IMG/VR virus record: IMGVR_UViG_3300029993_000005
Location: 1-64,000 of that record
Reading direction: 5' to 3' (one strand)
Length of the DNA: 64,000 nucleotides
This document shows, one piece after another, positions 1,379 to 12,433 of the stretch (the first letter of the stretch is position 1; each line of letters starts with the position of its first letter). Both the position numbers and the translations under genes were made by a program. The notes below the pieces were generated by a model. The model made no database searches, was not told the origin of the DNA, and saw only the letters and a program-made list of their open reading frames with translations.

Positions 1379-1513
1379 CTATAAATAGTGTCTAAGATGC
1401 GTCTCTAGAACTTGAGTAGCTTTAGCATTGGCATTCGTCGTGTAACAGAAATGCACGAAAGCCATGATCAACAAGAGGGCTATTACAAACCCAAGGGTTT
1501 CGTCTGGGGTCAT
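1379..1513 (-). CDS. 44-aa single-TM peptide MTPDETLGFVIALLLIMAFVHF...
   Basis: Manual translation; ATGA coupling with the 27-aa ORF. Confidence 0.6.
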   Translation of the reverse strand: MTPDETLGFVIALLLIMAFVHFCYTTNANAKATQVLETHLRHYL

Positions 1514-1682: not shown

Positions 1683-3074
1683 TTACTTCAGATTGCTATT
1701 TGCCCGGACTTGCGCAAAGGTCTGGTCGTTGTACGATACACCATTCTCGTACACAACACGCAGAAGATTCTGACTCTCAGGACGCGAGCCTTTCGGGACA
1801 GCAATCATTTTGCCTGTAGCGTCATATACAACCATCTGACGACCCTTCAGCGACGCTTTCTCAGGTGCAGTAATCGGACTCTTGTTGATACCCGTCCAAT
1901 GTTCACCATCAGCGGAAATCGCTGAAGCCTTCTGCGCCCAACCTAAGTCATCCCGCATAACTTCTTGCAACAGCGCACCACCCATACCGTACCCGTTATT
2001 CTCGATTGAGAGCTTGTTAAGCTCCAAAGCGTGACAGATACCGTTAATGGATGTACGGTTTACGCCGTCACCCTGGATAATGCGTGCTGCAGGGTTCACC
2101 ACATCGTAACCCTTCTTATTGGTGTGGAAACCGTAAGAGTTAGCGATAGACTTAACCGCGTAAACAACTTCTGCGATAGGCTTACCTGAGTCAAGACGGA
2201 TGACGGCGGTACCACCTTTCGCCAAGACCTTATCCTTCAACTGCTTGCCCCAGATGTTATCTACTGAGTTACGTTGATCGTAAGCATCGCAAACACACGC
2301 GTACTTCTTGCCTTCGCCACCATACACATCAATCATGCGTTCGTAAGCTTGGGCTTCCCTTTCACGACCCCATGCGGTCACGGTGAAATGTTCCATGGCA
2401 GGAATTGAATACCCCGCCATCCATTCATCGTAGAACTCGGTTGCGGCCTCTAAGGCTGGGACAGTATCAGTGCCCATAAAGTTGATCAAATGCGACATAC
2501 CACCAAGCGCAGCTGATTCTTCAGAACTGGCACCGCGACCCCCAAAGTCATGCAAGCGAAATGCAAGCTCTTCCTCGGGATTATCGCACGTTTGCTCTAA
2601 CCACTTACGCAAGTCCTGTTTGATATGCCAGCTCAGTGTAGCGACCGAAGACTGATACCATGCAGCACGCAGAATCTCGGTCTCAAGAAACGAACCAAGA
2701 GTCGGCAATAACGGGTCCGTGCTTACTACCTGATAACACGGGACACCGACCGGAACAATCAACCCCTCGGGAAGAGCTTCAATGCGAACCGGAGGCAGTC
2801 CGTTATGGACCTCAACGATACGCTTGAACTCTTCGTATGGAAAGATGCCGCAGTGCTCGACAATACGACGGTTTGCGTACTCCACACTTTCCATTGTCAG
2901 CGGATTCTTCATCAGCTTCCGCTTCCAACTTTGGAGACCAAACCACAGTACCTGCTTGTACATGTTCAGACTACGAGCTGAACCATAGTTACTGGCGTAT
3001 TTCAAATCGTCGGGCAGCTGCGGTCCATGCGAATACTTGTAGCTGTCCGACCCTAAAGCAAATCCGTAAGTCAT
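1683..3074 (-). CDS. nadV: nicotinamide phosphoribosyltransferase (NAMPT)
   Basis: DSYKYSH, LHDFGGRG, GTDT, SIPAMEH, IRLDSG, IIQGDG and GMGGALLQ motifs. Confidence 0.95.
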   Translation of the reverse strand: MTYGFALGSDSYKYSHGPQLPDDLKYASNYGSARSLNMYKQVLWFGLQSWKRKLMKNPLTMESVEYANRRIVEHCGIFPYEEFKRIVEVHNGLPPVRIEALPEGLIVPVGVPCYQVVSTDPLLPTLGSFLETEILRAAWYQSSVATLSWHIKQDLRKWLEQTCDNPEEELAFRLHDFGGRGASSEESAALGGMSHLINFMGTDTVPALEAATEFYDEWMAGYSIPAMEHFTVTAWGREREAQAYERMIDVYGGEGKKYACVCDAYDQRNSVDNIWGKQLKDKVLAKGGTAVIRLDSGKPIAEVVYAVKSIANSYGFHTNKKGYDVVNPAARIIQGDGVNRTSINGICHALELNKLSIENNGYGMGGALLQEVMRDDLGWAQKASAISADGEHWTGINKSPITAPEKASLKGRQMVVYDATGKMIAVPKGSRPESQNLLRVVYENGVSYNDQTFAQVRANSNLK

Positions 3075-3075
3075 G

Positions 3076-3126
3076 GCAAATCTCCTTTGCAGTTTTTAAA
3101 GACCCAGGCTCTCTGCCTAGGGTTTG
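3076..3126 (-). promoter_or_regulatory. Twin-hairpin 5' leader of nadV
   Basis: Hairpin with AGAGA loop at 3103-3122, then GCAAA-GGAGA-TTTGC around the SD at 3076-3090; same design upstream of nadM. Confidence 0.6.
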
Positions 3127-3156
3127 GTCTAGTATAAACGACCGAACACGGAATTA

Positions 3157-4275
3157 TTAATCACACGGAATCAAGTTAATCATCTTATGGATGATCCAGA
3201 AGTGATCCGAGTATAGCTCATGCGCTTGAAGTAGCCCGAGCGGTACCCACTTGACCTCTTCGAAATCATCGTTTGCCTCTACGAGAGGTAAAGAAGTATT
3301 GTCGTTCAGTAGATACAGATACGCATGCGTGATGATGCGTCCCCGGTCATCTGACCGATTCGGATCAGAGAACACGTGCTTGAACCTGAATGACAGGTCC
3401 AACATTGAACGCGGTAACTTAATGCGTGTTTCCTCGTGAGATTCACGCAATGAACTGTCAGCTAACACTTCGTCATCGTGTGCAAATCCACCTGGTAGCG
3501 CCCACAGTCCTTTACCAGGATTCAATTTGCGTTTACCCAGCAGTACGTGTGATGACTGAATGAACACTGAATCAGTAGTCGTCATTATAGGACGATAGGG
3601 TTTGTTGCCCGCATACTGGTGCTCAATTTTGTACTGAGCAGCAAAGTCACGCTGATCGCGCAAACCATCTATAAACTCAACGTTACGTGGAATCCAAGTA
3701 TCAAGATACTCCGCCACGGGTTCAGGTACGTGCTGCCGTGAATAGTTCCACGTACCGGCCAGAATGGAATCGCGTAGATCCGTTGCATTTAGAGTCACAC
3801 CTAAGCCGGGCATACCCAACTGTTGTACCTTGTAACCATGCACGTTGACTGAACCCCACTGCGGGAATTTCTTCAGATAGTACGAGGTATGGTCCTTAGA
3901 GAAACCAATCAGTCCTATAGTCCTAGGTATAGGCCAATCATCATCTGCAAGTTTGTTCTGAACGTAAGCAACCTTCTTATGGACATCCATACACCAGTGG
4001 AAATCGTGGTCATGCATGTGATCGTCTAAGAACTGAACGATGATGCGACTGTCTCTGATTTCCTGCTTGTACGTGCGCCATAGCATCTCTTCGACTTCAA
4101 CTGCCGTCCAGGGATTCTTTCGGGTACGAGGGCGGTTGGCTGAACCCGTCAAGACCAGTACATGACGCGCTTTCTTTAATGCTTCATCAATAACATGCTT
4201 GTGGCCATTATGTAAGGGGCGAAATCGACCAATGAACACAAGCATATCGAATTCATACTCATAGATGTTTGACAT
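3157..4275 (-). CDS. nadM: bifunctional NMN adenylyltransferase / Nudix (ADP-ribose) hydrolase
   Basis: GRFRPLHNGH nucleotidyltransferase motif, NATDLR, Nudix box ALPGGFAHDDEVLADSSLRESHEET; start moved to ATG 4275 behind GGAG. Confidence 0.93.
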   Translation of the reverse strand: MSNIYEYEFDMLVFIGRFRPLHNGHKHVIDEALKKARHVLVLTGSANRPRTRKNPWTAVEVEEMLWRTYKQEIRDSRIIVQFLDDHMHDHDFHWCMDVHKKVAYVQNKLADDDWPIPRTIGLIGFSKDHTSYYLKKFPQWGSVNVHGYKVQQLGMPGLGVTLNATDLRDSILAGTWNYSRQHVPEPVAEYLDTWIPRNVEFIDGLRDQRDFAAQYKIEHQYAGNKPYRPIMTTTDSVFIQSSHVLLGKRKLNPGKGLWALPGGFAHDDEVLADSSLRESHEETRIKLPRSMLDLSFRFKHVFSDPNRSDDRGRIITHAYLYLLNDNTSLPLVEANDDFEEVKWVPLGLLQAHELYSDHFWIIHKMINLIPCD

Positions 4276-4276
4276 T

Positions 4277-4325
4277 TGCAAATCTCCTTTGCAGTTAATA
4301 AAAGAACACTCTCTGTGTTCAGTTT
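4277..4325 (-). promoter_or_regulatory. Twin-hairpin 5' leader of nadM
   Basis: GAACAC-AGAGA-GTGTTC at 4304-4320; TGCAAA-GGAGA-TTTGCA at 4277-4293. Confidence 0.6.
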
Positions 4326-4352
4326 GATTCAATTTGTATTTACTCCGCCGTT

Positions 4353-4670
4353 TTAATGACGAAAATCCTTAGGGTGTTGTCTCGTACTCCGACAGGAATG
4401 TGCGCACACGATGTAACCACAATTGTTTGTCTGACATTGAACGAACGTTTTTAGTTGGATGACGGTCATAATCACTGTGATATGCAGGCTTGAATAAATT
4501 AACTGCTTGAGTTGTCCCAGTTTTTCCTTAGGCACCAACTTCAGTAATTCAGCCGTGCGAGCTTTCTCGCTTTCAAGCTCGATGTTGGCCTGCATCCACA
4601 AATTCTTGAAATGCTCGGCCAGCGCGGCTTGGGAACGAACTCCGTTGCATAGGTCATCCGCGATTGACAT
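4353..4670 (-). CDS. hypothetical, paralogue of 22839-23030
   Basis: Shared AEHFKNLWMQA; start moved to ATG 4670 behind GAGG. Confidence 0.75.
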   Translation of the reverse strand: MSIADDLCNGVRSQAALAEHFKNLWMQANIELESEKARTAELLKLVPKEKLGQLKQLIYSSLHITVIMTVIQLKTFVQCQTNNCGYIVCAHSCRSTRQHPKDFRH

Positions 4671-4678
4671 AGTAGTCC

Positions 4679-5029
4679 TCAGATTTGAGCCGAAACTAAC
4701 ATCTTCGCGAATTTGCAGGCGTTCGACCAACCGCTAGTAGTGGGTTGGAAACGAGCAATTGGACTAACCCCGGAGGACGCGAAGTGCGGGTCTAATTTGT
4801 TTTGTGCTTGGTCCAGAAGTTCAGCCACCGAGGAGTAACCAAGATAAACCAAGGTCTTCATCCCTTCATAGTTTTTGGCATCGGGGTAGTGAACTTGAAG
4901 AACCAACACGTCTTGGTCCAGGCCTGGGAATGTTCGCGAATTGATGATCTTGAAATTCGATGGACTTGGATTGCTGTTGGGTGCAGCGTAAGGAGACGAC
5001 GAGCAACTCTTTAGCGGTGAGAGTCCCAT
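4679..5029 (-). CDS. hypothetical, paralogue of 12765-13121
   Basis: Shared SCSSSPYA..NSNP.P.NFKI, HYPDAKN.EG.K.LVY, DPHF. Confidence 0.85.
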   Translation of the reverse strand: MGLSPLKSCSSSPYAAPNSNPSPSNFKIINSRTFPGLDQDVLVLQVHYPDAKNYEGMKTLVYLGYSSVAELLDQAQNKLDPHFASSGVSPIARFQPTTSGWSNACKFAKMLVSAQI

Positions 5030-5031
5030 GA

Positions 5032-5625
5032 CTACTCCTCAAAGGGAATGAAACGGGAAAGAACCCGTTCAAGGTCAGCGAATAAAATTGAGTGACGACC
5101 TTCCTTTTCACTATTGACGGTGTACAGCGTAGGATTGGGCGAAGTATACCAACCGGGTGCAGCTTTGTAGGCTTTGACGAAGGCACGTAGGCGGGAAACT
5201 GCGTCCCTGCTCGTCCCACCAACCTTCTTTAGTGGTTGGTGGGAAGACACACTGGAGTCTACACGTTTAACTAAGGCCTCTGCCGTATGAACGGCATCAC
5301 GGGGACTTAAATACGGCCTATACTTAGCTGGTACTGTATCACACTTCGACACCCAGCGAATCGTAGTATCGTGCCAAGTGATCGTATGGATATACGCATC
5401 GGGCTTCTCGCTGCCCATCTCGTCCAGCTCTCTAAATGCGTCTTCAAGTTCTCTCGCTGCTTCTTCTGCACTGTCGTTCGCCGTTCGATCGGGATCCGGC
5501 TTGGATAGTGTCAGAAAGTTTGAAACAACGTGGTTGTTGACCGTAAGCTTAGCTTCAGCCACTAGCTCCGGACCAAGCTTGATGTTAGGAGCGCATAGAA
5601 TTGCAAGTGCATCAGTGATGTTCAT
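5032..5625 (-). CDS. hypothetical protein
   Basis: 197-aa ORF in the minus-strand array, AGGA RBS. Confidence 0.75.
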   Translation of the reverse strand: MNITDALAILCAPNIKLGPELVAEAKLTVNNHVVSNFLTLSKPDPDRTANDSAEEAARELEDAFRELDEMGSEKPDAYIHTITWHDTTIRWVSKCDTVPAKYRPYLSPRDAVHTAEALVKRVDSSVSSHQPLKKVGGTSRDAVSRLRAFVKAYKAAPGWYTSPNPTLYTVNSEKEGRHSILFADLERVLSRFIPFEE

Positions 5626-5699
5626 ATCAATTTCCTAATAGACGTCTACGATTTCTACTGAGTTTTAAATGATCGGCTTCCGTTGGGTCCCATAGAATA

Positions 5700-6164
5700 T
5701 CATAGAATATGCTGGCGGAAGTCAATATCCCAGGTACGTGGTGCATGCATGGCGAAACGTGGGTGGTAACTATCAGATTCAGATTTCCTAATGTCGAGGC
5801 GTAAGATTTGTAGGTCTTTCTCTAGTGGCAGGCACGCGAGATCCAGCTCATTTAACATGAGCATCAGTCCGTAGTCAGTGGGGGCAAAGACCGGGCTTTT
5901 ATACGCGCAGTCCACTCCTCTAGGTGAGGTCCATGGCCTATAGACTTCACCGACGCGCACCATGAGACCCGCCTTTACCAGCGCCTTACACGTATTGGAT
6001 ATACCAAGTGCTACATAGCCCACACGCCACAAGTTGTCGAACGTCCGTGGGCTTAGCTTGTGAATGTGACGAGCTTGCAGCCCTCTCAAGTCCTTGAAGG
6101 TGGTCCATCTAGTGTAGAAGGTGAAGGCCCCGAGTACTGCCCTATGTTTTAGGTTGAGTTGCAT
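5700..6164 (-). CDS. hypothetical protein (possible winged helix)
   Basis: 154-aa ORF; GISNTCKALVKAGLMVRVG resembles a wHTH recognition helix plus wing. Confidence 0.6.
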   Translation of the reverse strand: MQLNLKHRAVLGAFTFYTRWTTFKDLRGLQARHIHKLSPRTFDNLWRVGYVALGISNTCKALVKAGLMVRVGEVYRPWTSPRGVDCAYKSPVFAPTDYGLMLMLNELDLACLPLEKDLQILRLDIRKSESDSYHPRFAMHAPRTWDIDFRQHIL

Positions 6165-12358: not shown

Positions 12359-12433
12359 TGGTCTGCCCTCTAGGAATCGAACCTAGACCCACAGCTTAGA
12401 AGGCTGTTGCTCTATCCGTTGAGCTAAGGGCAG
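12359..12433 (-). tRNA. tRNA-Arg (anticodon UCU), CCA encoded
   Basis: Full cloverleaf: CTGCCCT/AGGGCAG acceptor, GCTC/GAGC D stem, ACAGC-CTTCTAA-GCTGT, CTAGG-TTCGATT-CCTAG, A73-CCA. Confidence 0.97.

Follow-up and report, generated by a model that had tools for sequence, protein, structure and literature searches.

A conserved and apparently undescribed two-hairpin RNA leader on the NAD-salvage genes of many phages and some bacteria

The two NAD-salvage genes of the phage studied here, nadV and nadM-Nudix, each carry a leader composed of two hairpins, and our comparative analysis (covariance modelling combined with the analysis of upstream regions, operons and gene content) showed that these leaders belong to a widespread, apparently undescribed RNA family associated with NAD-salvage genes of many phages and some bacteria. 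Hairpin 1 (P1) has an AGAGA loop on stems that are unrelated in sequence between the two genes, and is followed by an A/U-rich linker of 10-12 nt and by hairpin 2 (P2), which holds the Shine-Dalgarno GGAG in a pentaloop 1-2 nt before the AUG. The element is probably a switch that sets how much of these costly anti-defence enzymes is made. We are highly confident that it is a selected cis-regulatory RNA of NAD-salvage genes, while the nature of the signal it would respond to can be proposed only tentatively (see below).

The analysed window comprises the first 64,000 nucleotides of the IMG/VR record IMGVR_UViG_3300029993_000005, and both genes lie on its minus strand. The nadV gene (1683-3074, 463 aa) encodes a nicotinamide phosphoribosyltransferase (Nampt), as judged by its Pfam NAPRTase (9.8e-44) and NAMPT_N domains, a match to NCBIfam PRK09198 above the cut-off (461.6 bits against 405) and its assignment to PHROG 448. 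The nadM-Nudix gene (3157-4275, 372 aa) encodes a bifunctional NMN adenylyltransferase / ADP-ribose pyrophosphatase with Pfam CTP_transf_like and NUDIX domains, its best NCBIfam hits being the PRK05379 subfamilies, albeit below their equivalog cut-offs. The nadV leader (3072-3127 through the AUG) consists of CAAAC (3126-3122), P1 at 3121-3103 (CCUAGGC / GCCUGGG, 7 bp including one U-G pair) with the AGAGA loop at 3114-3110, the linker at 3102-3091, P2 at 3090-3076 (GCAAA / UUUGC) with the loop GGAGA at 3085-3081, a C at 3075 and the AUG at 3074-3072. The nadM leader (4273-4327) consists of CAAAC (4326-4322), P1 at 4320-4304 (GAACAC / GUGUUC, 6 bp) with the AGAGA loop at 4314-4310, the linker at 4303-4294, P2 at 4293-4277 (UGCAAA / UUUGCA) with the loop GGAGA at 4287-4283, an A at 4276 and the AUG at 4275-4273. 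As delimited here, P2 ends 1 nt and P1 ends 28 nt before the AUG in both leaders.

The window alone provides only modest evidence. The 17-mer CTGCAAAGGAGATTTGC occurs exactly twice in the window (0.22 expected with up to 3 mismatches) and twice in the whole 230-kb genome, and both hairpins are present in the minimum-free-energy fold of each leader, but the single-sequence folding z-scores are weak (-0.8). Moreover, hairpins of at least 5 bp with an A-N-A-G-A loop are not rare in themselves (4 in the window on both strands against 4.6 expected in shuffles). What is non-random is the position 28 nt before both NAD gene starts, the identical hairpin 2, and the membership of a large covarying family. 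A Shine-Dalgarno sequence placed in a hairpin loop is not simply the general style of this phage, as only 10 of the 78 SD-bearing ORF starts examined have such a hairpin, most of them with 4-bp stems; stems of at least 5 bp were found at only 2 of the 78, nadV among them (the scan missed nadM).

The comparative evidence, in contrast, is decisive. A covariance model (R3) built from 60 leaders of other phages and bacteria, with a seed that excluded the window and the loci designated L003 and L004 (the latter a near relative of the window), identified exactly the two window leaders in 64 kb, at 43.8 bits (E 1.1e-6) for nadV and 40.8 bits (E 4.7e-6) for nadM. A related model (R2) applied to the whole genome gave E-values of 8.3e-8 and 2.7e-6, respectively. 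On 59 distinct sequences all 12 modelled pairs show double changes, with 93.2% of cells paired versus 58.8% in shuffles, 219 double-change cells versus 59.5, and a covariation score of 0.765 versus 0.19 (at most 0.14 in slid registers); another such analysis gave similar figures. The covariation extends to the P2 columns (AU/GC/UA/CG). In a model-free test, a perfect stem of at least 4 bp around an A-N-R-G-A loop was present in 72 of 164 nadV/nadM upstream regions, as compared with 16 of 831 other ORF upstream regions in the same loci (5 of these 16 being NAD leaders that had not been listed) and 2.9% of shuffles. The loop of hairpin 1 is A-N-A-G-A, with A1 (62/62), G4 (61/61) and A5 (61/61) invariant and A at position 3 in 54 of 61 sequences. 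An AAGA tetraloop variant is seen in phiRSL1 and BcepSauron. Across the family P1 ends 23-32 nt and P2 ends 0-4 nt before the AUG.

The association with NAD genes is exclusive in the genomes examined. The 230-kb genome of the window holds only these 2 copies, Synechococcus phage B23 (243 kb) has significant hits only at its nadM and nadV leaders, which are of the G-AUAGA-C type, and complete phage genomes of 181-518 kb hold 2-5 copies, all of them at NAD genes or at small ORFs heading those operons. An unbiased DNA-pattern scan of IMG/VR returned 81 matches, of which 60 precede nadV, whereas the other 21 have non-complementary arms and no ORF, as expected for chance matches. The motif is carried by non-homologous genes of one pathway, namely nadV, nadM and pnuC (PF04973), the last followed by a NadR-like kinase or by NadE, and it is kept even where nadM and nadV lie far apart on the contig. 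It occurs in dozens of phages sharing only about 40% protein identity, including a cyanophage and Xanthomonas phages such as the cultured carrier LucasX, and in bacterial loci of a Campylobacterales MAG, a Pseudomonadales 1-Mb contig, a Xenococcaceae cyanobacterium, Thiolinea and Thiothrix, a taxonomic breadth typical of riboswitches. The Pseudomonadales and Campylobacterales loci have chromosomal neighbours. On the other hand, many cultured NARP2 phages lack the motif, including KP27, Ah1, the Vibrio phage D527 and Staphylococcus phage Sa30. Weak model hits in bacterial genomes upstream of dnaB, a transporter gene and others are ribosome-site look-alikes without hairpin 1, although this whole-genome search scored only 150 candidates per genome, missed a known copy and is thus not exhaustive.

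No known RNA family accounts for these leaders. Four scans against Rfam 15 (at the gathering threshold on the window, and in E-value mode on the leaders at E up to 10, on 10 typical loci at E up to 1 and on a 96-nt leader at E up to 10) returned only a tRNA and noise in or near the leaders; a tRNA, a tmRNA and weak noise hits elsewhere in those loci are unrelated. Literature searches for a riboswitch or motif of nadV or nadM returned nothing relevant, although most subscription journals lay outside the literature searched and a prior description cannot be fully excluded.

A sequence-only reading had drawn attention to the twin hairpins of the two leaders, and this observation is confirmed by our analysis. 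Its interpretation, a selected RNA structure acting as a shared translational operator that couples the two enzymes and matches no motif recognised by that reading, is supported in part. The core inference is strongly backed by the covariation in both stems (the lack of which in homologues had been named beforehand as one part of the grounds for rejecting it), the invariant loop, the fixed spacing to the AUG, the exclusive association with NAD genes and the lack of an Rfam match. Two points require correction. First, the leader is not a peculiarity of this phage or of phages, but a family that also covers pnuC-nadR/nadE operons and some bacterial nadM-nadV operons. Second, CsrA, suggested as one possible ligand along with a phage protein, the Nudix enzyme or a metabolite, is a poor candidate (see below), while the choice between a metabolite and an enzyme (NadM/NadV) is not resolved by the present data.

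The most likely explanation is that both leaders are copies of a cis-acting RNA operator dedicated to the NAD+ salvage regulon (nadV, nadM-Nudix and, in other genomes, pnuC-nadR/nadE), which in phages is the NARP2 counter-defence pathway. In the proposed mechanism, hairpin 2 holds the Shine-Dalgarno sequence in a 4-5 nt loop (or, in one subgroup, in a CUCC:GGAG stem), so that the 30S subunit could bind only when hairpin 2 opens, whereas hairpin 1, with its freely varying stem, invariant pentaloop and fixed position upstream of the AUG, would be the recognition element for a signal reporting NAD status. We tentatively favor direct sensing of an NAD-pathway metabolite (NAD+, NMN, ADP-ribose, nicotinamide or PRPP) by the two-hairpin RNA, that is, a small riboswitch; in this view NAD+ sufficiency would lock hairpin 2 shut, and NAD+ depletion, for example by host NADase defences, would release translation. 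The analysis itself establishes the conservation of the structure with covariation, the invariance of the loop, the fixed spacing and the exclusive gene association, whereas the action on translation, the binding of any effector (including a metabolite) to hairpin 1, the identity of this effector and the sign of regulation are inferred. The need for tight control is plausible, as NARP2 overproduces NAD+ and drains PRPP, and the KVP40 operon was toxic in E. coli (bioRxiv 10.1101/2024.02.11.579819). Both known NAD+ riboswitch classes also gate the ribosome-binding site of NAD genes, pnuC among them (PMC7708056, PMC7749635).

Several features speak against the riboswitch version. The RNA is very simple for a selective aptamer, being composed of two plain hairpins and about five invariant unpaired bases beyond the Shine-Dalgarno sequence, with no junction or conserved bulge found. 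A pseudoknot between the AGA of loop 1 and the UYU that starts the 3' strand of hairpin 2 is geometrically possible but unsupported, since inspection of the alignments by eye showed that the few loop variants (AGUGA, AUGGA, ACGGA) are not compensated. Hairpins with an invariant loop and a free stem are classic protein sites. One subgroup (loci L010-L017) replaces the SD-in-loop hairpin with an anti-SD:SD stem, so a model of two similar loops docking together is not general. The evidence is entirely sequence-based, the sequencing runs listed being DNA runs of peat metagenomes with no RNA run among them.

If the RNA does bind a metabolite, it would represent a new and unusually small NAD-related riboswitch class; if it binds NadM or NadV, it would be a new case of a metabolic enzyme moonlighting as a translational repressor. 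A more far-reaching version, which the data leave possible but which we consider unlikely, is a third, very small class of NAD-pathway riboswitch, carried mainly by phages, that would keep the costly NARP2 / PnuC-NadR genes translationally silent while NAD+ is plentiful and turn them on when a host NADase defence (Thoeris, SIR2, DSR and similar) collapses NAD+ or releases ADP-ribose and nicotinamide, in effect a viral RNA sensor of host immune activation. NAD+ depletion is a major antiphage strategy and NARP2 (Nampt + Nmnat) is a known phage counter-measure, but in the literature searched we found nothing published on how phages control these genes. A dedicated, deeply conserved putative RNA operator on nadV, nadM and pnuC gives this question a concrete 55-nt object amenable to bench testing and, under either version, defines a regulon marker that can help annotate NAD-salvage and anti-defence islands, and the unknown small ORFs embedded in them, in phage and bacterial genomes.

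The closest alternative, only somewhat less favored and likewise doubtful, is enzyme autoregulation, in which NadM-Nudix or the NadV dimer would moonlight as an RNA-binding repressor recognizing the pentaloop of hairpin 1 (and possibly the similar purine loop of hairpin 2) and blocking 30S binding, with an affinity modulated by a bound pathway metabolite. Precedents are ThrRS on the thrS operator, PyrR (a phosphoribosyltransferase) on pyr leaders, and NadR/NrtR as NAD-sensing regulators at the DNA level. An invariant loop on a sequence-free stem at a fixed distance to the AUG fits steric occlusion by a protein, and every motif-bearing genome checked encodes both NadM and NadV, so this possibility is not excluded. 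The two window loops differ by one base (AGAGA and GGAGA), hairpin 2 of phiRSL1 (locus L005) itself carries CC-AGAGA-GG, the PyrR site consensus ARUCCAGAGAGGYU (PMC7430163) shows that a phosphoribosyltransferase-fold protein can read a CC-AGAGA-GG hairpin, and the NadM Nudix domain gives a weak hit to the model of the ADPR-responsive repressor NrtR. On the other hand, a Pfam search finds no RNA-binding domain in either enzyme, the proteins diverge to 35-40% identity while the loop stays invariant, and the motif also precedes pnuC and small ORFs.

A constitutive leader without sensing, that is, a 5' stabilizing or processing hairpin plus a structured ribosome-binding site tuning a fixed, matched translation rate for the pathway enzymes, is unlikely. 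Hairpin 1 does lie near predicted transcript starts in 15 of 46 distinct copies, the short A/U-rich stems of hairpin 2 could simply damp translation, and the A/U-rich linker resembles an S1-type enhancer sequence. However, this reading explains neither the invariance of A1, G4 and A5 across phyla nor the restriction to NAD genes in genomes of 181-518 kb, and the rarity of SD-in-loop hairpins with stems of at least 5 bp in the window (see above) also speaks against it.

A site for a host global RNA-binding regulator (CsrA/RsmA or PyrR) is very unlikely. Hairpin 2 presents A-GGA-G in a loop over the Shine-Dalgarno sequence, as in a canonical CsrA-type site, but CsrA sites require GGA (in an A-N-GGA core) in the loop of each bound hairpin, and hairpin 1 has AGA instead, both in the window and in 54 of 61 distinct family sequences. 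Some copies of hairpin 1 contain UCC-AGAGA-GG, matching the PyrR core, but the commonest loop, G-AUAGA-C, does not fit the PyrR consensus, the phage genomes encode no type-I phosphoribosyltransferase (PF00156), and no Rfam family hits the leaders at any score, even at E up to 10 on 96 nt. Furthermore, the hosts span cyanobacteria, Xanthomonas, Burkholderiales relatives and Campylobacterota, and restriction to NAD genes is not what a global regulator predicts. A DNA-level palindromic operator for a transcription factor, an intrinsic terminator between genes or a local duplication within this phage is largely refuted as an explanation of the family by the comparative data, while nadM P1 itself may also fit a terminator. 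Although both hairpins are DNA palindromes, nadM P1 is followed by UUUUAUU and passes a simple terminator scan (nadV P1, followed by UCUUUAAAAA, does not), and hairpin 2 is an exact 17-mer repeat within this genome, the stems covary without sequence conservation around a conserved asymmetric centre (the opposite of a dimeric DNA operator), the orientation is always sense at a fixed distance to the AUG, most family members have no U-tract after hairpin 1, and the family spans genomes at about 40% protein identity, so that a local duplication cannot explain it.

Among described systems, the NAD+-I riboswitch (nadA motif) is likewise a leader of an NAD-pathway gene made of two tandem stem-loops, the second of which contains the ribosome-binding site (PMC7297122, PMC7708056). 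Its domains, however, are bulged stem-loops with a conserved ACANCCCC bulge and an internal loop, whereas the present hairpins are plain, with the conserved bases in a terminal pentaloop and no match to the Rfam model; the gene set (nadV, nadM, pnuC) and the taxa also differ. The NAD+-II riboswitch (pnuC motif) controls an NAD-salvage gene at the Shine-Dalgarno sequence (PMC7749635), and pnuC is one of the genes carrying the present motif in some phages, but NAD+-II is a pseudoknot with three helices and a triple-helix segment (PMC10085692), for which we found neither covariation support, as judged by eye on the alignments, nor an Rfam hit. The guanidine-II riboswitch (mini-ykkC) is composed of two small hairpins with covarying stems and conserved terminal loops, a variable linker, and a second hairpin next to the Shine-Dalgarno sequence, and provides a precedent that such simple RNAs can be riboswitches. 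Its loops are ACGR tetraloops that kiss through C-G pairs, as opposed to the purine-rich pentaloops without mutual complementarity seen here, its gene context is unrelated, and no Rfam hit was obtained.

The PyrR binding loop is a hairpin with the recognition core CC-AGAGA-GG, read in response to nucleotides (PMC7430163). Some nadV leaders contain AGUCC-AGAGA-GGAC, and the phiRSL1 hairpin 2 is UCC-AGAGA-GGA, yet in our family the closing pair and stem are free, the window cores read GGC-AGAGA-GCC and CAC-AGAGA-GUG, the purine-rich internal bulge that PyrR requires is absent, and there is no Rfam hit. In the thrS translational operator a ThrRS dimer binds two hairpin loops upstream of its own Shine-Dalgarno sequence and competes with the 30S subunit, the upstream hairpin occupying about the same position relative to the AUG as hairpin 1. 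The thrS loops mimic the tRNA-Thr anticodon loop, while nothing here resembles a known substrate of NadM or NadV, and any binding of these enzymes remains hypothetical.

We also considered whether the transcript could start at an A just before hairpin 1, which would suggest a role in NAD capping. A sigma-70-like promoter candidate (TTAATA, 18 nt, TATACT; 3131-3160, minus strand), identified by consensus match only, ends 9 nt before nadV P1, and a -10 box 6-13 nt before P1 is seen in 9 of the 15 other motif copies that have a recognizable promoter. This idea is not general, however, as only 15 of 46 distinct copies have such a promoter, the distance varies (1-23 nt) and many copies are intercistronic. 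A megablast search of the region against cultured phages found nothing, while by NadV identity the closest cultured relatives are BcepSauron and phiRSL1.

The window forms the first 64 kb of a 230,110-bp IMG/VR virus record, which is estimated to be 97% complete and recurs in many peat metagenomes (the phage was seen in more than 20 peat, soil and permafrost metagenome runs). By NadV identity its nearest cultured relatives are Burkholderia phage BcepSauron (59%) and Ralstonia phage phiRSL1. Two adjacent genes lie on the minus strand. The nadV gene (1683-3074, 463 aa) has NAPRTase and NAMPT_N domains and matches PRK09198 above its cut-off, whereas nadM-Nudix (3157-4275, 372 aa) combines cytidylyltransferase and NUDIX domains, its best NCBIfam hits being bifunctional NMN adenylyltransferase/Nudix. 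Together they are the Nampt + Nmnat pair named NARP2, a phage pathway that rebuilds NAD+ against NAD-depleting defences (bioRxiv 10.1101/2024.02.11.579819). The ORFs flanking the pair (window 4353-4730 and 443-1281, both minus strand; 125, 150, 77 and 50 aa) have no Pfam match, and the three of them scanned against PHROGs (125, 150 and 77 aa) have no PHROG match either. A tRNA-Arg gene (anticodon TCT; 12359-12433, minus strand) was the only Rfam or ARAGORN hit in the window.

The sequence-only reading had described the same twin-hairpin leader in front of both genes, and this observation held, the strings it gave being exact. In the nadV leader, hairpin 1 occupies 3103-3121 (7 bp including one U-G pair) with the loop AGAGA at 3110-3114, followed by a 12-nt linker, hairpin 2 at 3076-3090 with GGAGA in the loop, a single base and the AUG at 3072-3074. 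In the nadM leader, hairpin 1 occupies 4304-4320 (6 bp) with the loop AGAGA at 4310-4314, followed by a 10-nt linker, hairpin 2 at 4277-4293 with the loop GGAGA, a single base and the AUG at 4273-4275. The 17-mer covering hairpin 2 occurs exactly twice in the window and twice in the whole genome, and both hairpins are present in the minimum-free-energy fold. Taken alone, however, the evidence from the window is modest, as the folding z-scores are only -0.8, and hairpins of at least 5 bp with an A-N-A-G-A loop occur 4 times in the window against 4.6 expected in shuffles. What is special is that two of those four sit 28 nt before the starts of the two NAD genes, each followed by the same hairpin 2.

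To assess whether this arrangement extends beyond a single phage, we retrieved from IMG/VR 17 loci encoding NadM relatives and 80 loci encoding NadV relatives, and read the 100-130 nt before each start codon. The same architecture was found at only 35-45% protein identity: a hairpin with a stem of free sequence and a loop A-N-A-G-A, an A/U-rich linker, and a short hairpin around the Shine-Dalgarno sequence ending 0-4 nt before AUG. The commonest loops, written with their closing pair, are G-AUAGA-C and C-AGAGA-G, while AGUGA, ACAGA, AUGGA, ACGGA and AAAGA also occur. A model-free count found a perfect stem of at least 4 bp around A-N-R-G-A in 72 of 164 NAD-gene upstream regions, as compared to 16 of 831 other ORF upstreams in the same loci (five of these 16 turned out to be NAD leaders that had not been listed) and 2.9% of shuffles. 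Hairpin 1 ends 23-32 nt before AUG.

A first covariance model (R1, 14 seeds) gave 73 hits at E up to 1 in 657 kb, essentially all of them directly before nadV, nadM or a small ORF heading the nadM operon. On the resulting alignments 93% of cells pair versus 59-61% in shuffles, double-change cells number 219-237 versus 60-66, and the covariation score is 0.66-0.77 versus 0.17-0.19, falling to at most 0.14 in slid registers. In the cleaner set all 12 pairs show compensatory changes. Such counts are inflated by the fact that the alignments are fitted to the model, but the model-free count is independent of this effect. The loop shows A at position 1 in 62/62, U33, G22, C4 and A2 at position 2, A54, U5 and G2 at position 3, G at position 4 in 61/61 and A at position 5 in 61/61. 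Another model (R3), built from 60 leaders with no sequence from the window or from its close relative L004, finds exactly the two window leaders (43.8 and 40.8 bits; E 1.1e-6 and 4.7e-6) and both leaders of L004. On the other hand, the covariance models miss the versions in the nearest cultured relatives, phiRSL1 (locus L005, about 2925-2991 and 4565-4628) and BcepSauron (loci L008/L104), where hairpin 1 has an AAGA tetraloop. In phiRSL1 this hairpin is followed by a U-tract, which makes it terminator-like, and hairpin 2 itself reads UCC-AGAGA-GGA two bases before AUG, close to the PyrR core consensus. Within one genome the two copies of hairpin 2 are identical or nearly so (window 3076-3092 and 4278-4294; loci L004, L006, L008 and L118), while they differ between genomes (GCAAAGGAGAUUUGC in the window, GCAACAGGAGUUGC in BcepSauron, CUAAAGGAG-N-UUUAG in Synechococcus phage B23). 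This is suggestive of gene conversion or co-evolution with a genome-specific factor, although it does not hold in all phages (e.g. loci L035 and L067).

The motif proved to be specific for NAD genes. Whole-genome scans found only the two leaders in the window's own 230-kb genome and only the nadM and nadV leaders in Synechococcus phage B23, and complete phage genomes of 181-518 kb hold 2-5 copies. An unbiased DNA-pattern scan of IMG/VR for one subtype gave 81 matches, of which 60 precede nadV, while the remaining 21 have non-complementary arms and no ORF, roughly what chance predicts. Where nadM lies elsewhere on the contig, outside the 2.5-kb flanks of nadV, each gene keeps its own copy. A third copy in one 283-kb phage led to a third gene type, pnuC (PF04973, 2e-37), followed by a NadR-like protein with the AAA_28 ribosylnicotinamide-kinase domain or, in a relative, by NadE (NAD synthase). 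The motif is found there in four related jumbo or mega phages (locus L357, 793-1555, minus strand; loci L358-L361, near 1450-1503, plus strand), with different, compensated hairpin 1 stems. The regulon is therefore wider than nadV and nadM, although the window's own genome has no pnuC. In addition, small ORFs of 50-155 aa with no Pfam or PHROG match carry the motif at the head of some nadM, nadV or pnuC operons (L095:238-705, L060:3818-4171, L359:1313-1465 and L384:1549-1890), some of them overlapping the next start codon. These are unknown members of the NAD regulon and, in principle, candidates for a trans-acting factor.

Cultured carriers are Synechococcus phage B23 (both genes) and Xanthomonas phages LucasX and RTH11 (nadM), whereas no motif was detectable in the cultured NARP2 phages KP27, Ah1, D527, TCU-VP04-AIR2, RHph_I1_18, CcrRogue, DIGNKC, Sa30, finno and Acj9. 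Among 80 bacterial nadV loci the model gave 7 hits in 6 loci (E from 1e-4 to 0.4), namely a Campylobacterales MAG, a Pseudomonadales 1-Mb contig, a Xenococcaceae cyanobacterium, Thiolinea disciformis, a Thiothrix MAG and an Epsilonproteobacteria MAG. Chromosomal neighbours such as KptA, NADAR and DbpA were seen in the Pseudomonadales and Campylobacterales loci. The bacterial nadM-nadV operons that carry the motif are flanked by KptA/Tpt1 (RNA 2'-phosphotransferase) and NADAR genes (L191:9-1153 and L186:3846-4394), that is, by a wider neighbourhood of NAD and ADP-ribose metabolism. The element is therefore not phage-specific.

No Rfam 15 family matched any leader, even at E up to 10 on a 96-nt query, which excludes membership of the nadA (NAD+-I), pnuC (NAD+-II), PyrR-site and mini-ykkC families as Rfam models them, and literature searches returned no description. 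Overall, as far as Rfam 15 and the searchable literature show, cis-regulatory leader RNAs of this class are undescribed. The finding is real and larger than could be seen from the one sequence, with a credible chance of being a new NAD-related riboswitch used by phages to deploy an anti-defence pathway on demand.

The fixed distance to AUG, the enclosure of the Shine-Dalgarno sequence in hairpin 2 (in the form of a CUCC:GGAG stem in one subgroup of loci, L010-L017) and the occurrence both at predicted transcript starts and between cistrons point to control of translation initiation. Hairpin 1 carries the only invariant unpaired bases and, in this view, must be what is recognized. The recognizer would have to be present in cyanophages, Xanthomonas phages, relatives of Burkholderiales phages and several bacterial phyla, which leaves a pathway metabolite or one of the pathway enzymes. 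While the conserved and covarying structure, the invariant loop positions, the spacing and the gene association are read directly from the sequences compared, the action on translation, the recognition of hairpin 1, the nature of the recognizer (including any metabolite or protein binding) and the sign of regulation are inferred. Feedback repression by NAD+ sufficiency would be the most economical sign, given that NARP2 overproduces NAD+ and drains PRPP (bioRxiv 10.1101/2024.02.11.579819).

We tentatively favor a riboswitch, a reading supported (albeit not proven) by the association with non-homologous genes of one pathway across phyla and by the precedent of NAD+-I and NAD+-II acting at the ribosome-binding site. 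Autoregulation by an enzyme remains possible and only somewhat less likely, as suggested by the simplicity of the RNA, the pattern of a free stem with a fixed loop, and the presence of NadM and NadV in every carrier checked. A tuning element without any sensing appears unlikely. Host global regulators are more doubtful still. CsrA, which had been proposed from the sequence alone, is unlikely because loop 1 is AGA, not GGA. The PyrR consensus ARUCCAGAGAGGYU (PMC7430163) resembles the C-AGAGA-G subtype, but it does not fit the commonest loop or the window's stems, and the phages encode no type-I phosphoribosyltransferase. The interpretation offered by the sequence-only reading, a shared translational operator bound by a protein (CsrA/RsmA, a phage protein or the Nudix enzyme) or responding to a metabolite, is supported in part, its core (a selected RNA structure shared by the two genes) strongly so by the comparative data. 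Least likely are a local duplication, a DNA-level operator (the stems covary without sequence conservation while the asymmetric center is fixed) and a terminator (most copies lack a U-tract, although in the window nadM hairpin 1 is followed by UUUUAUU and passes a simple terminator scan).

In one of the uncultured phage contigs (locus L064) a permuted tmRNA (109 bits; 5482-5925, plus strand) and a tRNA (86-160) lie within 3.5 kb of nadV. In a complete 518-kb phage (locus L376; G018:C1:183051-184421) the nadV match is reported with one in-frame TGA, which may represent a sequencing error, a split gene or a recoded stop.
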